DNA of 64,000 nucleotides, taken from Guillardia theta CCMP2712. Lineage: Eukaryota > Protista > Cryptophyta. The notes under the pieces are model-generated. The model was given only the letters and a program-made list of their open reading frames with translations. It was not told the DNA's origin and searched no databases. Numbering within the stretch: position 1 is the stretch's first letter; the number at the start of each line of letters is the position of its first letter. This document shows, piece by piece, positions 58,401 to 60,838 of the stretch. The position numbers and the translations under genes were made by a program. Location of the stretch: positions 66,852 to 130,851 of the forward strand of contig NW_005434668.1 of NCBI RefSeq assembly GCF_000315625.1, read 5' to 3'.

Positions 58401-60838
58401 TCTGCTCTGCTCTGCTCTGCTCTGCTCTGCTCTGCTCTGCTCTGCTCTGCTCTGCTCTGCTCTCTTTTTGTACCTGCAGAGCAGAGATGACGGAGAGAAC
58501 TGGAGGGAGGGCGGCAGGCCCAAGTCTGTGAGCTGCAGAGAATGAGGTAAGAAGTGCAAGAAAACTAACATGACGATGAACATGCAGTGAAGCAGCACCA
58601 CGAGTACAAGTTTGAGAAAGTATGAGTACAAAAAAACAAGTATGAGTATGACGACGACGACGACGACGACGATGATGATAATGAACAGGAATTCATGGAA
58701 GGAGGAGAAGATACGGACCAGCAACTGAGAGGGCTTGAGCTGCTGTTTCCCTTACGGGGGAGATCAGAAAGTCTCCACTGTAATCGCTAAACCTGGACGA
58801 GAAACCTTCACAAGCTGCGCAATATGATCGAATCATTGCAATCGCAATGAGATCAACATTCACTCTTCAACCATACTGCTGTCTCACAGACATGACTCGT
58901 CACAACTTTGCTCGTCCCACCTGTCAAGAGCGAGGACTCTGAGGAGCTGAACGACGCACTCGATGACGAAACTCCTTCTGATGACGTCATCGTCCTCCTT
59001 CTTGGCGATGGTCTTGTTTGTAGAGCACGGATGGTACTTGAGGACGTGTTTCAGGACAAGAGCAGCTCCGTGCCTGCAACCTCGTCCGTTATCTCCTACC
59101 AGGAGCTCTCGCACTTGGCCATTGCCTGACTTCCCAGGCAGGGTGAAGGAGGTTGTCTCTGCCATACTGCAAACTCCCTCAATCGCGCAAAAATGATGCA
59201 ACACCTGTCTCCCTCCCTCTCCCTTCTTCTCCCTCTCTCCCTCCCTCTCCCTCCCTCTCTCCCCCCCCCCCTCTCTCTCTCCCTCTCCCTCTGCCTCCCT
59301 CTCCCACTCGTTTTCCCCCTCCCTCTTCCTCCTTCCCCATCTCTCTCTGACCTTACAGACATCGCTCAAGACCCAACTCAAGTCTTTCTCCTCGCCTTCT
59401 CCCTGACCGCCGTATTGCACAATCATTTCCTCCCCGAGCTCTCGCTCGGTGCTATCACGTTGGTCCTTCTCCTTTTCCGCCTCCAATCTTCCTTTGACGC
59501 TCTTTCTTCCCTTGACGTTGTTACTGGGAGTCTACCCAGCGTCAAACTCTCGTTTCGTTGCAAGACTCAACCTTACCGCGTCTACGATTGAGTTGGCAGG
59601 CTGGGCAAACAGCAACGAAGAATCTTGTACACGAATCGAAGTAAGCAAAGGATTAGAGCAACAGCACAAACCTTTGATCTCTTCAAGAATCTCCAGCCTC
59701 TTCAGCGGTTCAAACATCAACGTGTCATCATGTGATGAAGGAGAGTACGCTCTTGCGTCCCCTGCTGTGGCCCCGGCTGCAGCGGCATCCAGGCTCTCCT
59801 CCTCTACCTCCGCTGCAATCAGTTCCATAGTCTTGCAAGCAGCAGCTCGCGTGTCCCAGTCCCTTGAGCCGCAGAGGACCATAACACGTTGAACGATCTT
59901 CATTCTCACTTCTCTGTAGTTGAGAACATGATAAGCTTGCAAGCACATGTCAGCGAACATCACCTGTGAGCTTTGAAAAGGCCAGCAATTTGTTCAGCAG
60001 CTGCCTGCACCACATGTCAAGTTTTCGCGCGATAGGACATGGCTCGGTTGACTTGCCAGTCTGCTTCGAAGGTCACTGCCAGAAGCAAGAAGCACAAGGG
60101 TTCTTTCAAATCTTGTACTCTTCATTTCCTCTTTCTTCTTCTGGTTCTCTTGCTTGGACGGCTTGGCTGTGGTTGCTGTCTCCAATGATTTCTTCTGCTG
60201 CATTGAGCCTCGCACAGGTTTTGTTCTTTGCTTCTTTGTTGGACGAATCGCCGCCAAGAAGGTTTCAACATCGGTTTCTTTCCTGAGCATGTCTTAACAC
60301 AGCTCATTTTGATCTTCATTGAAGCTCACATGCCCAGCTCTTTGAGATCAGGCGCTGTCAGCGACTCCAGATTTCGAGGCTTTATCCCCTCCTTTTCCTT
60401 CAAGGAGGGAAACATTACAAAACATCGCAATAATAGCAAGCGATACTTACGAAAACTTCAACGTATCTTTCCAAACCGATGGAACTGCAAATCGTGATTC
60501 AGAAACAGGGCTCGAGATTTACAGAGCAGGCATGATAGCGATGCGTTGCGTTACCTCAGCGCTGATGCAAGGGAGGCACTTTGTTGACCTCCTCGTAGCC
60601 TCACAATGTTTCTGTGATTTTGCTGAACTAGCCATTCCCGAATTTTTCTTGGCGATCCCCTTTCTAACAAGACAATCCTGTTGGACGCAGCATCTCCAGC
60701 CAGCAGCAGTGGATCCTGTGTCTTTCTTGACATCCATACTCTCGACCAAGCTCCTCCTGCTCCTCCTCCACCACTTCCTCCTGCTCCTTCCCATGGCAGC
60801 AGCGCCATGACCAGGACTATCAGCAGTCGCATCGCCAT
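52443..60838 (-). CDS. BTAF1: MOT1/BTAF1 SNF2 ATPase with N-terminal signal peptide, VRLRGG motif and SAM domain
   Basis: [20 protein letters not shown]...[10 protein letters not shown] (Mot1 N-terminus), [17 protein letters not shown] region, [68 protein letters not shown]-terminal [10 protein letters not shown]. Upstream exons splice in frame to a leader starting at 60838. Confidence 0.9.
55727..55896 (+). repeat. (GAT)n microsatellite in BTAF1 intron
   Basis: Direct reading. Confidence 0.95.
58290..58463 (+). repeat. (CTCTG)n microsatellite (~34 units) in BTAF1 intron
   Basis: Direct reading. Confidence 0.95.

Follow-up and report, generated by a model that had tools for sequence, protein, structure and literature searches.

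The minus strand of the 64,000-nt stretch of Guillardia theta CCMP2712 DNA analyzed here (the window) carries a gene that, judged from its sequence, is a lineage-specific and fast-evolving Mot1 paralog with a conserved bipartite-type leader. The coding region of this Mot1/BTAF1 paralog, here called type B, extends over 52443..60838 (minus strand), as delimited by an RNA contig, matches to a Mot1 HMM and a stop codon. Its pattern fits a paralog whose targeting has shifted to the periplastid compartment and nucleomorph, for which it is a good but unproven candidate. On the sequences at hand, what is new here is the leader-SAM-Mot1 order, which is conserved in four uncultured relatives, as far as Mot1 itself in two of them.

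One transcript from leader to ATPase

A signal peptide, a linker, VRLRGG, a SAM-like domain, a Lys-rich stretch and the Mot1 N-terminus had been placed in a single frame by an earlier, sequence-only reading, and both the positions and the introns agree with this. All leader-to-Mot1 elements were confirmed on the minus strand, and the hand-drawn introns, all of them GT-AG and in frame, each appear as a splice joint in RNA contigs from two independent runs. A single spliced RNA contig of 5393 nt, starting at 60826, links the exons of the leader and the SAM domain to the Lys-rich linker and a complete Mot1 with HEAT region and SNF2 ATPase. RNA was thus found to connect leader and Mot1 from 60826 onward, although not over the first 12 nt from the proposed ATG at 60838. 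The mRNA measures 5.39 kb or more and encodes a protein of about 1750 aa that ends at a TAG stop codon (52445-52443).

Exon 1 (60555..60838, minus strand, as are all parts of the gene; RNA contigs cover 60826-60555 only) encodes the leader, RLRGG and the start of the SAM domain, and is followed by exon 2 (60484-60451), exon 3 (60397-60330) and exon 4 (from 60282), with introns proven by RNA joints. The SAM domain (residues 89-142; 60243..60574) is spread over exons 1-4. Pfam searches with residues 80-150 placed both SAM_2 (E = 9e-7, 29.4 bits against a cut-off of 20.5) and SAM_1 (27.2 bits against a cut-off of 23) above their curated cut-offs, which bears out the SAM-like domain of the earlier reading, and the closest solved structure in the PDB is the ANKS3 SAM domain (1.7e-5). 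A SAM domain is absent from the more than 230 other Mot1 homologs listed with Pfam domains, so that the SAM-Mot1 fusion, here found in one transcript, stands as novel among them. Next comes a Lys-rich linker of 39 aa (60126..60242) with NLS-like KKQR and QKKK clusters; the 45-residue stretch around it holds 14 K+R vs 4 D+E.

The canonical Mot1 N-terminus (59964..60125) begins at Met182 (60125), ends with exon 5 and is interrupted by an RNA-proven intron (60052-60001). This segment aligns with residues 1-35 of fungal Mot1, and a 17-residue motif at residue 182, the canonical Mot1 Met, aligns with fungal MTSRLDRLVTLLETGS, residues 1-20. The first HEAT-region exons (59913-59672, 59623-59577 and 59531 onward; within 59400..59913) are supported by RNA joints and match Mot1 HMM positions 61-127. 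For the HMM, full-length Mot1 sequences were drawn from a mainly fungal list, with Mot1 of a tremellomycete fungus as the search carrier; its matches are collinear between 59903 and 52751 on the minus strand, with HMM positions 60-188, 365-446, 537-608 and 1074-1905 matched in order. In the middle region the HMM matches are weak and the G. theta sequence is strongly divergent; the central Mot1 domain PF12054 (DUF3535) was not matched in two middle ORF pieces, where the exon model is approximate. Dynamic programming gave two exon models of the entire gene, which were used for rough HMM coverage only, as they are unreliable in the divergent, low-complexity middle because their exon sum is ~700 nt below the RNA contig.

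Toward the C-terminus, a large exon (53285..55528), identified by Pfam and by motifs, encodes the C-terminal HEAT repeats, the SNF2 ATPase lobe and Helicase_C, and a further exon (53140..53268; tblastn and HMM matches) carries helicase motif VI. The C-terminal ATPase matches the Pfam families SNF2-rel_dom (6.2e-67) and Helicase_C (8.1e-17), and ATPase motifs I (GLGKT), II (DEGH), III (TGTP), V (GGLGL) and VI (11 residues) are intact. Among the best 120 matches listed (E <1e-156), all that are functionally named are TBP-associated factor, Mot1 or BTAF1.

GenBank divides the gene into two partial models, GUITHDRAFT_132947 (388 aa), which includes Mot1 HEAT sequence and omits one RNA-proven exon, and GUITHDRAFT_46535 (partial, 494 aa). 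Taken literally, this annotation would put the leader and SAM exons in one gene and the Mot1 exons in another, an outcome that the earlier reading had named as a way to refute its proposal. Since the 5393-nt contig holds leader, SAM and Mot1 exons in one transcript, that refutation fails and the genes as annotated are ruled out; the same fusion also occurs in two of the relatives, L002 and L005, and we regard the chance of two genes as negligible. The public annotation, by splitting and truncating the gene, may explain its absence from earlier surveys of predicted periplastid proteins. A gene that is separate from Mot1 lies head-to-head with it on the plus strand (61055..61651; annotated product of 100 aa), for which RNA reads show splicing (GT..AG joint 61181/61479) and polyadenylation at 61651. 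This neighbor leaves about 230 nt for the promoter and 5' region of Mot1.

Relatives and place in the Mot1 tree

Four uncultured environmental relatives (L002, L005, L006 and L007-L010) were compared with the G. theta gene. All four share the same order, namely a Met/basic/hydrophobic start, an acid-poor basic spacer, RLRGG, and one or two SAM domains, and where the contig is long enough to tell (L002 and L005), a basic linker and Mot1 follow the SAM. Hydrophobic cores lie at the matching position in L002, L005, L006 and L007, and L006 and L007 begin with MAR, comparable to MAMR in G. theta. The first residues after the core are G, S, A or Q in the relatives, and their spacers contain only 0-1 acidic residues. 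RLRGG is invariant across the five aligned leaders (G. theta and the four relatives); leader length among these sequences ranges from 50 to 84 aa, and only RLRGG and the hydrophobic start are conserved. The SAM regions of the second L002 piece, L005 and L007 score 28-41 bits, with the first L002 piece at 19.5 bits, below the cut-off, and basic linkers occur at the matching place in L002 (KRKRAK) and L005 (RKRGARNK).

In the tree of genes with the ATPase region, the G. theta gene falls inside Mot1 and forms a long-branched clade with P0002, P0004 and P0007 (support 100/99). The type B clade is sister (100/99) to a canonical pair made up of Chroomonas P0005 and of P0006, the latter a gene with a canonical Mot1 start. 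L005 is likewise closer to the type B clade (56-59% identity) than to the canonical clade (42-46%). Together, the shared leader order of the relatives and the distinct clade indicate a lineage-specific Mot1 paralog with a conserved bipartite-type leader. The earlier reading had expected red-algal affinity; instead, the tree, which samples no red algae, puts the clade sister to canonical cryptophyte Mot1, and this position suggests that type B arose by duplication of the cryptophyte gene. The contigs with canonical Mot1, L003 and L004, extend only ~300 nt upstream of the Mot1 start, so they may possess a distant leader exon.

The leader and the 5' end of the mRNA

Four Met codons lie in exon 1 on the minus strand: Met1 (60838), Met3 (60832), Met11 (60808) and Met36 (60733). 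Read from Met1, the protein has a signal-peptide-like N-terminus, with MAMR as n-region, a hydrophobic core of 12 residues (60791..60826) and the small residues EGAGG. The mean Kyte-Doolittle hydropathy of the core is 3.09 over 11 residues, which is matched by ~1% of the other ATG ORFs in the window. The core is followed by E-G-A-G-G-S-G-G, so that a putative +1 position there would be neither aromatic nor Leu. The spacer (residues 21-84) is Arg/His-rich, with 11 K+R vs 4 D+E, and closes with a 10-residue leader end containing RLRGG (60587..60616; five-sequence alignment and tblastn), in which VRLRGG occupies 60604-60587; the SAM fold starts about 4-8 residues beyond RLRGG. According to previous work on G. 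theta (PMC4494062), proteins with a signal peptide are retained in the periplastid compartment when the transit-like peptide that follows lacks an aromatic residue at its start. The proposal of a signal plus transit leader gains from the recurrence of the architecture in four relatives, while the RNA, which starts 12 nt inside the proposed ATG, speaks against it.

No Pfam family was matched by exon 1, and a search of 1.84 billion representative proteins returned no significant relative of the leader exon except its own GenBank model, along with three weak partial matches (E 1e-4 to 8e-4). A word search seeded with residues 85-262 of that GenBank model found nothing but the model, its length window concealing full-length kin. 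RLRGG occurs three times in the six-frame translation of the window vs 0.46 expected. A second leader with a signal peptide and RLRGG is found in the same window at 41410-41273.

Where translation begins bears directly on where the protein goes. Both RNA assemblies, from two runs, begin at 60826, so neither ATG 60838 nor ATG 60832 is in the RNA, and at least 10 RNA-type runs lack the stretch 60800-61045, which DNA runs contain. The first AUG on the observed mRNA is Met11, from which only ALLPW of the hydrophobic core would remain. These ends would be explained if the gene encoded a host-nuclear Mot1 paralog starting at Met11 or Met36, with the upstream hydrophobic codons belonging to the promoter or 5' flank, the spacer and RLRGG staying in the mature protein, and the basic linker directing it to the host nucleus. 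The context of Met11 is good (GTCATGG), and a start at 60826 would leave it an 18-nt 5' UTR, close to the 17 nt of the spliced leader with a further 0-1 nt, a common arrangement in G. theta (Roy 2017, PMC5619915). In the same study, ~5% of trans-spliced genes had the site inside the annotated CDS, which was read as the mark of a misannotated start. However, all four relatives retain the Met/basic/hydrophobic start in the same place, including the MAR of L006 and L007, and a 12-residue core of this hydropathy right after an in-frame ATG has a chance of ~1%. RNA-seq assemblies, moreover, frequently miss the extreme 5' end. We therefore consider a host-nuclear start at Met11 or Met36 unlikely. 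Spliced-leader trans-splicing as the origin of the 60826 end is not supported, as the preceding bases are GA and not AG and no leader letters stand on the contig; the X2 RNA contig has one unmatched letter only at this end. An AG (60841-60840) sits 1 nt before ATG 60838, and the RNA contigs stop short of it. One 5' end might accordingly serve each of two products, with a periplastid/nucleomorph form made from a scarcer, longer mRNA (or from an mRNA trans-spliced at this AG) and a leaderless form, for the host nucleus or cytosol, made from the abundant 60826 mRNA. Such an arrangement would accommodate a conserved leader that coexists with RNA 5' ends inside it; earlier work proposed that G. theta aminoacyl-tRNA synthetases reach two compartments through alternative starts of transcription or translation (PMC4494062), and 1 nt is the commonest distance from spliced leader to ATG (PMC5619915). 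Yet the longer RNA form is absent from all indexed runs, the acceptor is AAG and not the usual YAG, and little evidence was seen for alternative trans-splicing that alters proteins (Roy 2017, PMC5619915). Dual use also has no evident need, because in cryptophytes a canonical Mot1 is encoded separately (Chroomonas P0005), and we likewise give two products a low probability.

The remaining readings concern the nature of the leader itself. It could lead to another signal-peptide-dependent site (ER lumen, secretion or stroma), or the 84 N-terminal residues could be a degenerate ubiquitin-like domain, and we hold either to be highly improbable. For a TBP-displacing ATPase that carries an NLS-like linker, neither the ER lumen nor the stroma nor the outside of the cell offers a plausible task. 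Nor does an aromatic residue follow the hydrophobic core. As to ubiquitin, LLLAG (residues 44-48) and RLRGG (80-84) loosely resemble, by eye, the LIFAG and RLRGG of ubiquitin. However, neither exon 1 nor residues 1-95 match any Pfam family, ubiquitin included, at E<=1, and the leaders vary in length and are conserved only at their two ends. An AlphaFold2 single-sequence model of the L005 homolog shows the leader with low confidence, as helices only and without strands, and confidence climbs at the SAM, just past RLRGG. With no Pfam match and a strandless model, a ubiquitin-like domain in the leader was rejected.

Proposed import route and comparison with known systems

On balance, we think it fairly probable that SAM-Mot1 is imported via its bipartite leader into the periplastid compartment and nucleomorph, where this candidate would act on nucleomorph TBP. 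We infer the use of Met1, all targeting steps, cleavage at RLRGG and the action on nucleomorph TBP. A conserved N-terminal module would have been added before the ancestral start Met of Mot1. The signal peptide would bring the protein into the ER lumen around the complex plastid, and the transit-like spacer would then take it across the periplastid membrane by the SELMA route; retention in the periplastid compartment is proposed because the spacer starts without an aromatic residue. The leader would be cut off at RLRGG or close to it, with the basic linker directing SAM-Mot1 into the nucleomorph. Mot1 in ordinary nuclei strips TBP from DNA, and the intact ATPase may do the same to nucleomorph TBP, with the SAM domain contributing self-association or partner binding. 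It has been reported that nucleomorphs encode TBP-associated factors (PMC6559170).

A literature search found no publication linking Mot1 with the nucleomorph and no published link of RLRGG with cryptophytes, the periplastid compartment or transit peptides. To our knowledge, host control of nucleomorph gene expression is an open question, with nucleomorph-encoded transcription factors too few and known imported regulators very few, and a leader-bearing, fast-evolving Mot1 paralog offers a concrete candidate for host control of TBP at nucleomorph promoters. The invariant RLRGG at the boundary of leader and mature protein, also present in a second gene of the window, suggests that periplastid import includes a step of maturation or recognition that has yet to be described. 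RLRGG is the C-terminal tail of ubiquitin, and deubiquitinases cleave ubiquitin precursors and fusions after it. More speculatively, and with the odds against it, the motif could be a ubiquitin-tail mimic behind whose GG a periplastid deubiquitinase cuts after SELMA-type import, a way of maturation shared by a whole class of host-encoded periplastid and nucleomorph proteins in cryptophytes, and the freed SAM-Mot1 could be a host-supplied master regulator of nucleomorph TBP dynamics.

Compared with Mot1 of yeast and BTAF1 of human, the G. theta protein has the same C-terminal SNF2 ATPase, order of the HEAT region and canonical N-terminal motif. It differs in the 181 residues added before the canonical Met (leader, RLRGG, SAM and basic linker), in its very divergent middle region, and in its long branch, within a clade apart from canonical cryptophyte Mot1. 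The best solved-structure matches of the SAM domain, which is also assigned to Pfam SAM_1 and SAM_2, are scaffolds (the SAM domains of ANKS3, ANKS6, BICC1 and tankyrase), whereas here the SAM is joined to a Mot1 ATPase, and it is doubled in relatives. With ubiquitin precursors and fusions, the leader shares an identical five-residue tail at the point where it would have to come off; by contrast, no ubiquitin fold or Pfam match lies ahead of this RLRGG, and cleavage is hypothetical.

The leader as a whole resembles the periplastid bipartite sequences of cryptophytes and diatoms in its hydrophobic start, its basic, acid-poor spacer and the lack of an aromatic residue or Leu after the G. theta core, but its spacer ends in an invariant RLRGG, for which the literature searched gave no counterpart among such leaders. 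In addition, Lys residues are reportedly required for SELMA transport in a diatom, whereas the leaders of the type B relatives are nearly Lys-free. In chlorarachniophytes, host-encoded histones and DNA replication proteins are imported into the nucleomorph. The type B protein is similar to these in being a host-encoded protein of nuclear type that combines a plastid-route leader with a basic nuclear-type signal, although the host here is a cryptophyte, the import is predicted, and the cargo is a general regulator of transcription, whereas the chlorarachniophyte examples serve chromatin or replication.

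Leader conservation in environmental relatives

The main new result is that the leader of the Guillardia theta CCMP2712 Mot1 paralogue is conserved across its relatives. The nearest homologue of the ATPase part, P0002, is encoded on a 9.5-kb ENA metagenome contig (L002). Ahead of the Mot1 pieces, on the same strand, a Met and basic n-region are followed by the hydrophobic core LAVVVAGAGAL; a short spacer that ends in HRNHLPWTMLRLRGG leads into two SAM domains, and a KRKRAK linker joins these to the N-terminal motif of canonical Mot1. Scanning JGI metagenomes with an RLRGG-SAM alignment recovered seven further loci, which appear to represent two additional organisms. 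The environmental contig L005 carries the full order on one strand: MHRAARH and its hydrophobic core lead into a spacer without acidic residues and HRLRGG, after which come a pair of SAM domains, an RKRGARNK linker, and the Mot1 N-terminus, HEAT region, and SNF2. Contigs L006 to L010, which stop short of any Mot1 body, begin with MAR(L/V)SAYIMSLLVMASIVAG and continue with a spacer, LRLRGG, and two SAM domains.

RLRGG is invariant in a five-way leader alignment, and all five leaders open with a Met, one or more basic residues, and a hydrophobic core whose hydropathy is 2.4-3.1; an equally strong hydrophobic start occurs in ~1% of the other ATG ORFs in the window. The spacers of the relatives contain 0-1 acidic residues, and that of G. 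theta contains 4 acidic versus 11 basic residues. When the L005 N-terminus was modelled with AlphaFold2 from its single sequence, the leader came out at low confidence, helical or disordered, and without strands, and the first SAM domain, directly past RLRGG, reached a confidence of 74-90. Together, the conserved order and the strand-free model suggest that the leader acts like a conserved signal for targeting or maturation. A folded ubiquitin-like domain in the leader was rejected, given the lack of strands and the low confidence before RLRGG in the L005 model.

The leaders of L002, L005, L006, and L007 are rich in Arg and His and almost lysine-free, with no lysine in L005 and a single one, within the signal-peptide n-region, in L002. 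This near absence would be odd if SELMA transport depends on lysines in the transit-like part, as reported for a diatom. The window contains a second gene start of this kind on the minus strand (41273-41410), with a hydrophobic, signal-peptide-like N-terminus (MGRLLGFKLAASFLLFSGLEAVLLA) and CHNHLRLRGG ~15 residues past it. Both leaders end in an H/N-rich stretch plus RLRGG; the first 102 aa of the second gene have no Pfam match.

A separate clade of Mot1 paralogues

Pairwise identities divide the compared Mot1 proteins into two groups. Chroomonas P0005 and the homologue P0006 share 68% identity and are 48-58% identical to Mot1 of other eukaryotes, whereas P0002, P0004, and P0007 share 58-62% among themselves and only 41-46% with the remainder; the G. 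theta paralogue is 47-52% identical to all those compared. In maximum-likelihood trees (LG+C20 PMSF; a quick one of 58 rows and a careful one of 29), G. theta, P0007, P0002, and P0004 form a long-branched group (100/99), and the sister of this clade is Chroomonas plus P0006 (100/99). The L005 protein is 56-59% identical to members of the G. theta clade and 42-46% to the canonical clade. The sequence-only reading had expected a red-algal affinity, which the tree contradicts by placing Chroomonas and P0006 as sister, in a set that includes environmental contigs but no red algae, haptophytes, or Goniomonas.

The P0006 gene begins with the canonical MAQQTTRLDRLLLLLDTGS, and a SAM domain was not found in the ~300 nt of contig upstream of its start. 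The simplest reading is that the cryptophyte Mot1 gene was duplicated, one copy staying canonical and the other probably gaining the leader/SAM module and evolving fast. ENA sample ERZ17293822 contains both L002 and L004, a contig with a canonical Mot1, at similar GC (0.60 and 0.59) and coverage (7 and 6), and the two may come from one organism carrying both paralogues.

Domain architecture and gene model

A 748-aa exon of the G. theta gene matches SNF2-rel_dom (6e-67), Helicase_C, and HEAT repeats in Pfam, with ATPase motifs I, II, III, V, and VI intact, and wherever its best 120 relatives bear a functional name, that name is TBP-associated factor, Mot1, or BTAF1. With an HMM made from the full-length Mot1 proteins of fungi (38 sequences), collinear matches were obtained in ORF pieces of the minus strand between 59903 and 52751. 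The beginning of canonical Mot1 aligns at residue 182 of the G. theta protein; the ancestral start Met is therefore residue 182, and all residues ahead of it were added. Within this addition, the SAM domain (residues 89-142) scores above the curated cut-offs for both SAM_2 (29.4 bits) and SAM_1 (27.2 bits), and its closest solved structure is the ANKS3 SAM. Among the >230 Mot1 homologues for which precomputed Pfam domains were listed, none carries a SAM domain. Pfam gives no match for exon 1, whose sole significant relative among 1.84 billion representatives is the GenBank model of this gene; three more matches are weak and cover only part of it (E 1e-4 to 8e-4).

The hand splicing of the sequence-only reading was reproduced on the minus strand from 60838, with six exons in a single frame and GT..AG bounds throughout (60838-60555, 60484-60451, 60397-60330, 60282-60053, 60000-59964, and 59913-59672). 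The region 59400-61900 was compared with two assemblies of spliced RNA, a raw RNA run, and a DNA assembly. Every hand-drawn intron, plus two more, is a joint in RNA contigs from two independent runs, and a 5393-nt RNA contig (mean depth 179) runs unbroken from 60826 across leader, SAM, and Mot1 exons. The leader and SAM exons therefore belong to a single gene with Mot1 rather than to one of their own, and the proposed SAM fusion is genuine, given the joined exons and the Pfam scores. No reads fell on the paralogue in the raw RNA run at the sampling used. The protein length (~1750 aa) is an estimate from the 5393-nt contig, and the exon model between ~59400 and 55530 is approximate. At ~59060-59130 (minus), the conserved motif WEVR-HGAA appears to be restored only with a GC..AG intron (donor AG|GCAATG).

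GenBank divides this gene, which lies on nuclear DNA, into GUITHDRAFT_132947 (XP_005840164.1; 388 aa, 'SAM domain-containing protein'; 58884-60838) and the partial, 494-aa GUITHDRAFT_46535 ~4 kb downstream (52759-54868), both on the minus strand of the window and on one strand of scaffold JH992970.1, and leaves its middle unannotated. The first 94 residues of the former, which starts at 60838, are identical to exon 1, and the latter is 96% identical to the SNF2 part. In detail, the 388-aa model is incorrect: exon 60282-60053, which RNA proves and which encodes the final helix of the SAM domain, the Lys-rich linker, and the start of canonical Mot1, is missing from it. Convergent on the paralogue lies a ribonucleotide reductase large-subunit gene (50581-52359, plus); 84 nt separate its stop from that of Mot1 (TAG 52445-52443), so that the 3' UTRs must overlap or be very short. 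Head-to-head on the other side is a small, highly expressed gene (61055-61651, plus; annotated 100 aa, ATG 61060) with its poly(A) site at 61651; its intron (61182-61478) is RNA-proven and is kept unspliced in assembly X1. Many raw reads of this neighbour start at 61055, 5 nt before its ATG, with an acceptor-like ccccatAG ahead.

Start codon and proposed destination of the protein

Both RNA assemblies start at 60826 (X2 with one additional unmatched letter), 12 nt 3' of ATG 60838 and 4 nt 3' of ATG 60832-60830. DNA runs contain the segment 60800-61045 (share 1.00 and 0.78), but it is missing from all the RNA-type runs covered, at least 10 in number. Taken literally, the RNA end makes Met11 (60808) the first AUG, with loss of the signal peptide. 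Extreme 5' ends are, however, often missing from assemblies, and comparison with the relatives speaks for Met1 as the true start. The RNA ends and the conserved leader nevertheless conflict, so that the protein could also be host-nuclear, or the gene could have dual products; we consider these two readings equally unlikely.

In G. theta, a 17-nt leader is trans-spliced to at least 21% of genes, usually 0-1 nt ahead of the ATG (PMC5619915). An AG (60841-60840) lies 1 nt ahead of ATG 60838, but as AAG rather than YAG, and the RNA contigs stop short of it; no AG directly precedes 60826. Position 60826 is the exact shared end of the two RNA assemblies, at depths of 6 and 179, and the 17-nt spliced leader plus 13 nt (60839 to 60827) sums to 30, or k-1 for 31-mer assemblies, which could be either chance or a product of the assembly. 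At two positions the window disagrees with X9, a low-depth DNA contig of 2011. An A5 run at 60643 is one nucleotide shorter in X9, which the RNA contigs contradict; X9 also has a 1-nt insertion inside ATG 60838 (60836), beyond RNA coverage, which may be a sequence error or a variant.

With Met1 as the start, the signal peptide and transit-like spacer would bring the paralogue to the periplastid compartment and then to the nucleomorph, the only sensible destination for an ATPase that displaces TBP and has both a signal peptide and an NLS-like linker. We regard such import as the probable fate of the protein. The G. theta nucleomorph encodes TBP itself. TBP-associated factors are also encoded by nucleomorph genomes (PMC6559170). 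The features noted in the sequence-only reading are confirmed, and the core of that reading, a conserved, import-type leader on a distinct Mot1 paralogue with a genuine SAM fusion, is strengthened; a role of the imported protein in controlling the endosymbiont nucleus is a candidate one. Cleavage of the leader at RLRGG by a periplastid deubiquitinase is attractive, because RLRGG is the C-terminal tail sequence of ubiquitin and lies a few residues ahead of the SAM fold, yet we hold it to be a tentative idea, rather doubtful as it stands; our literature search returned no description of an RLRGG-type motif in such leaders. In G. theta, a protein without an aromatic residue (or Leu) starting the stretch behind its signal peptide stays in the periplastid compartment, the site of the nucleomorph (PMC4494062). 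The residues following the G. theta hydrophobic core are E-G-A-G-G-S, with neither an aromatic residue nor Leu, and the predicted Mot1 leader would thus fit this targeting rule.
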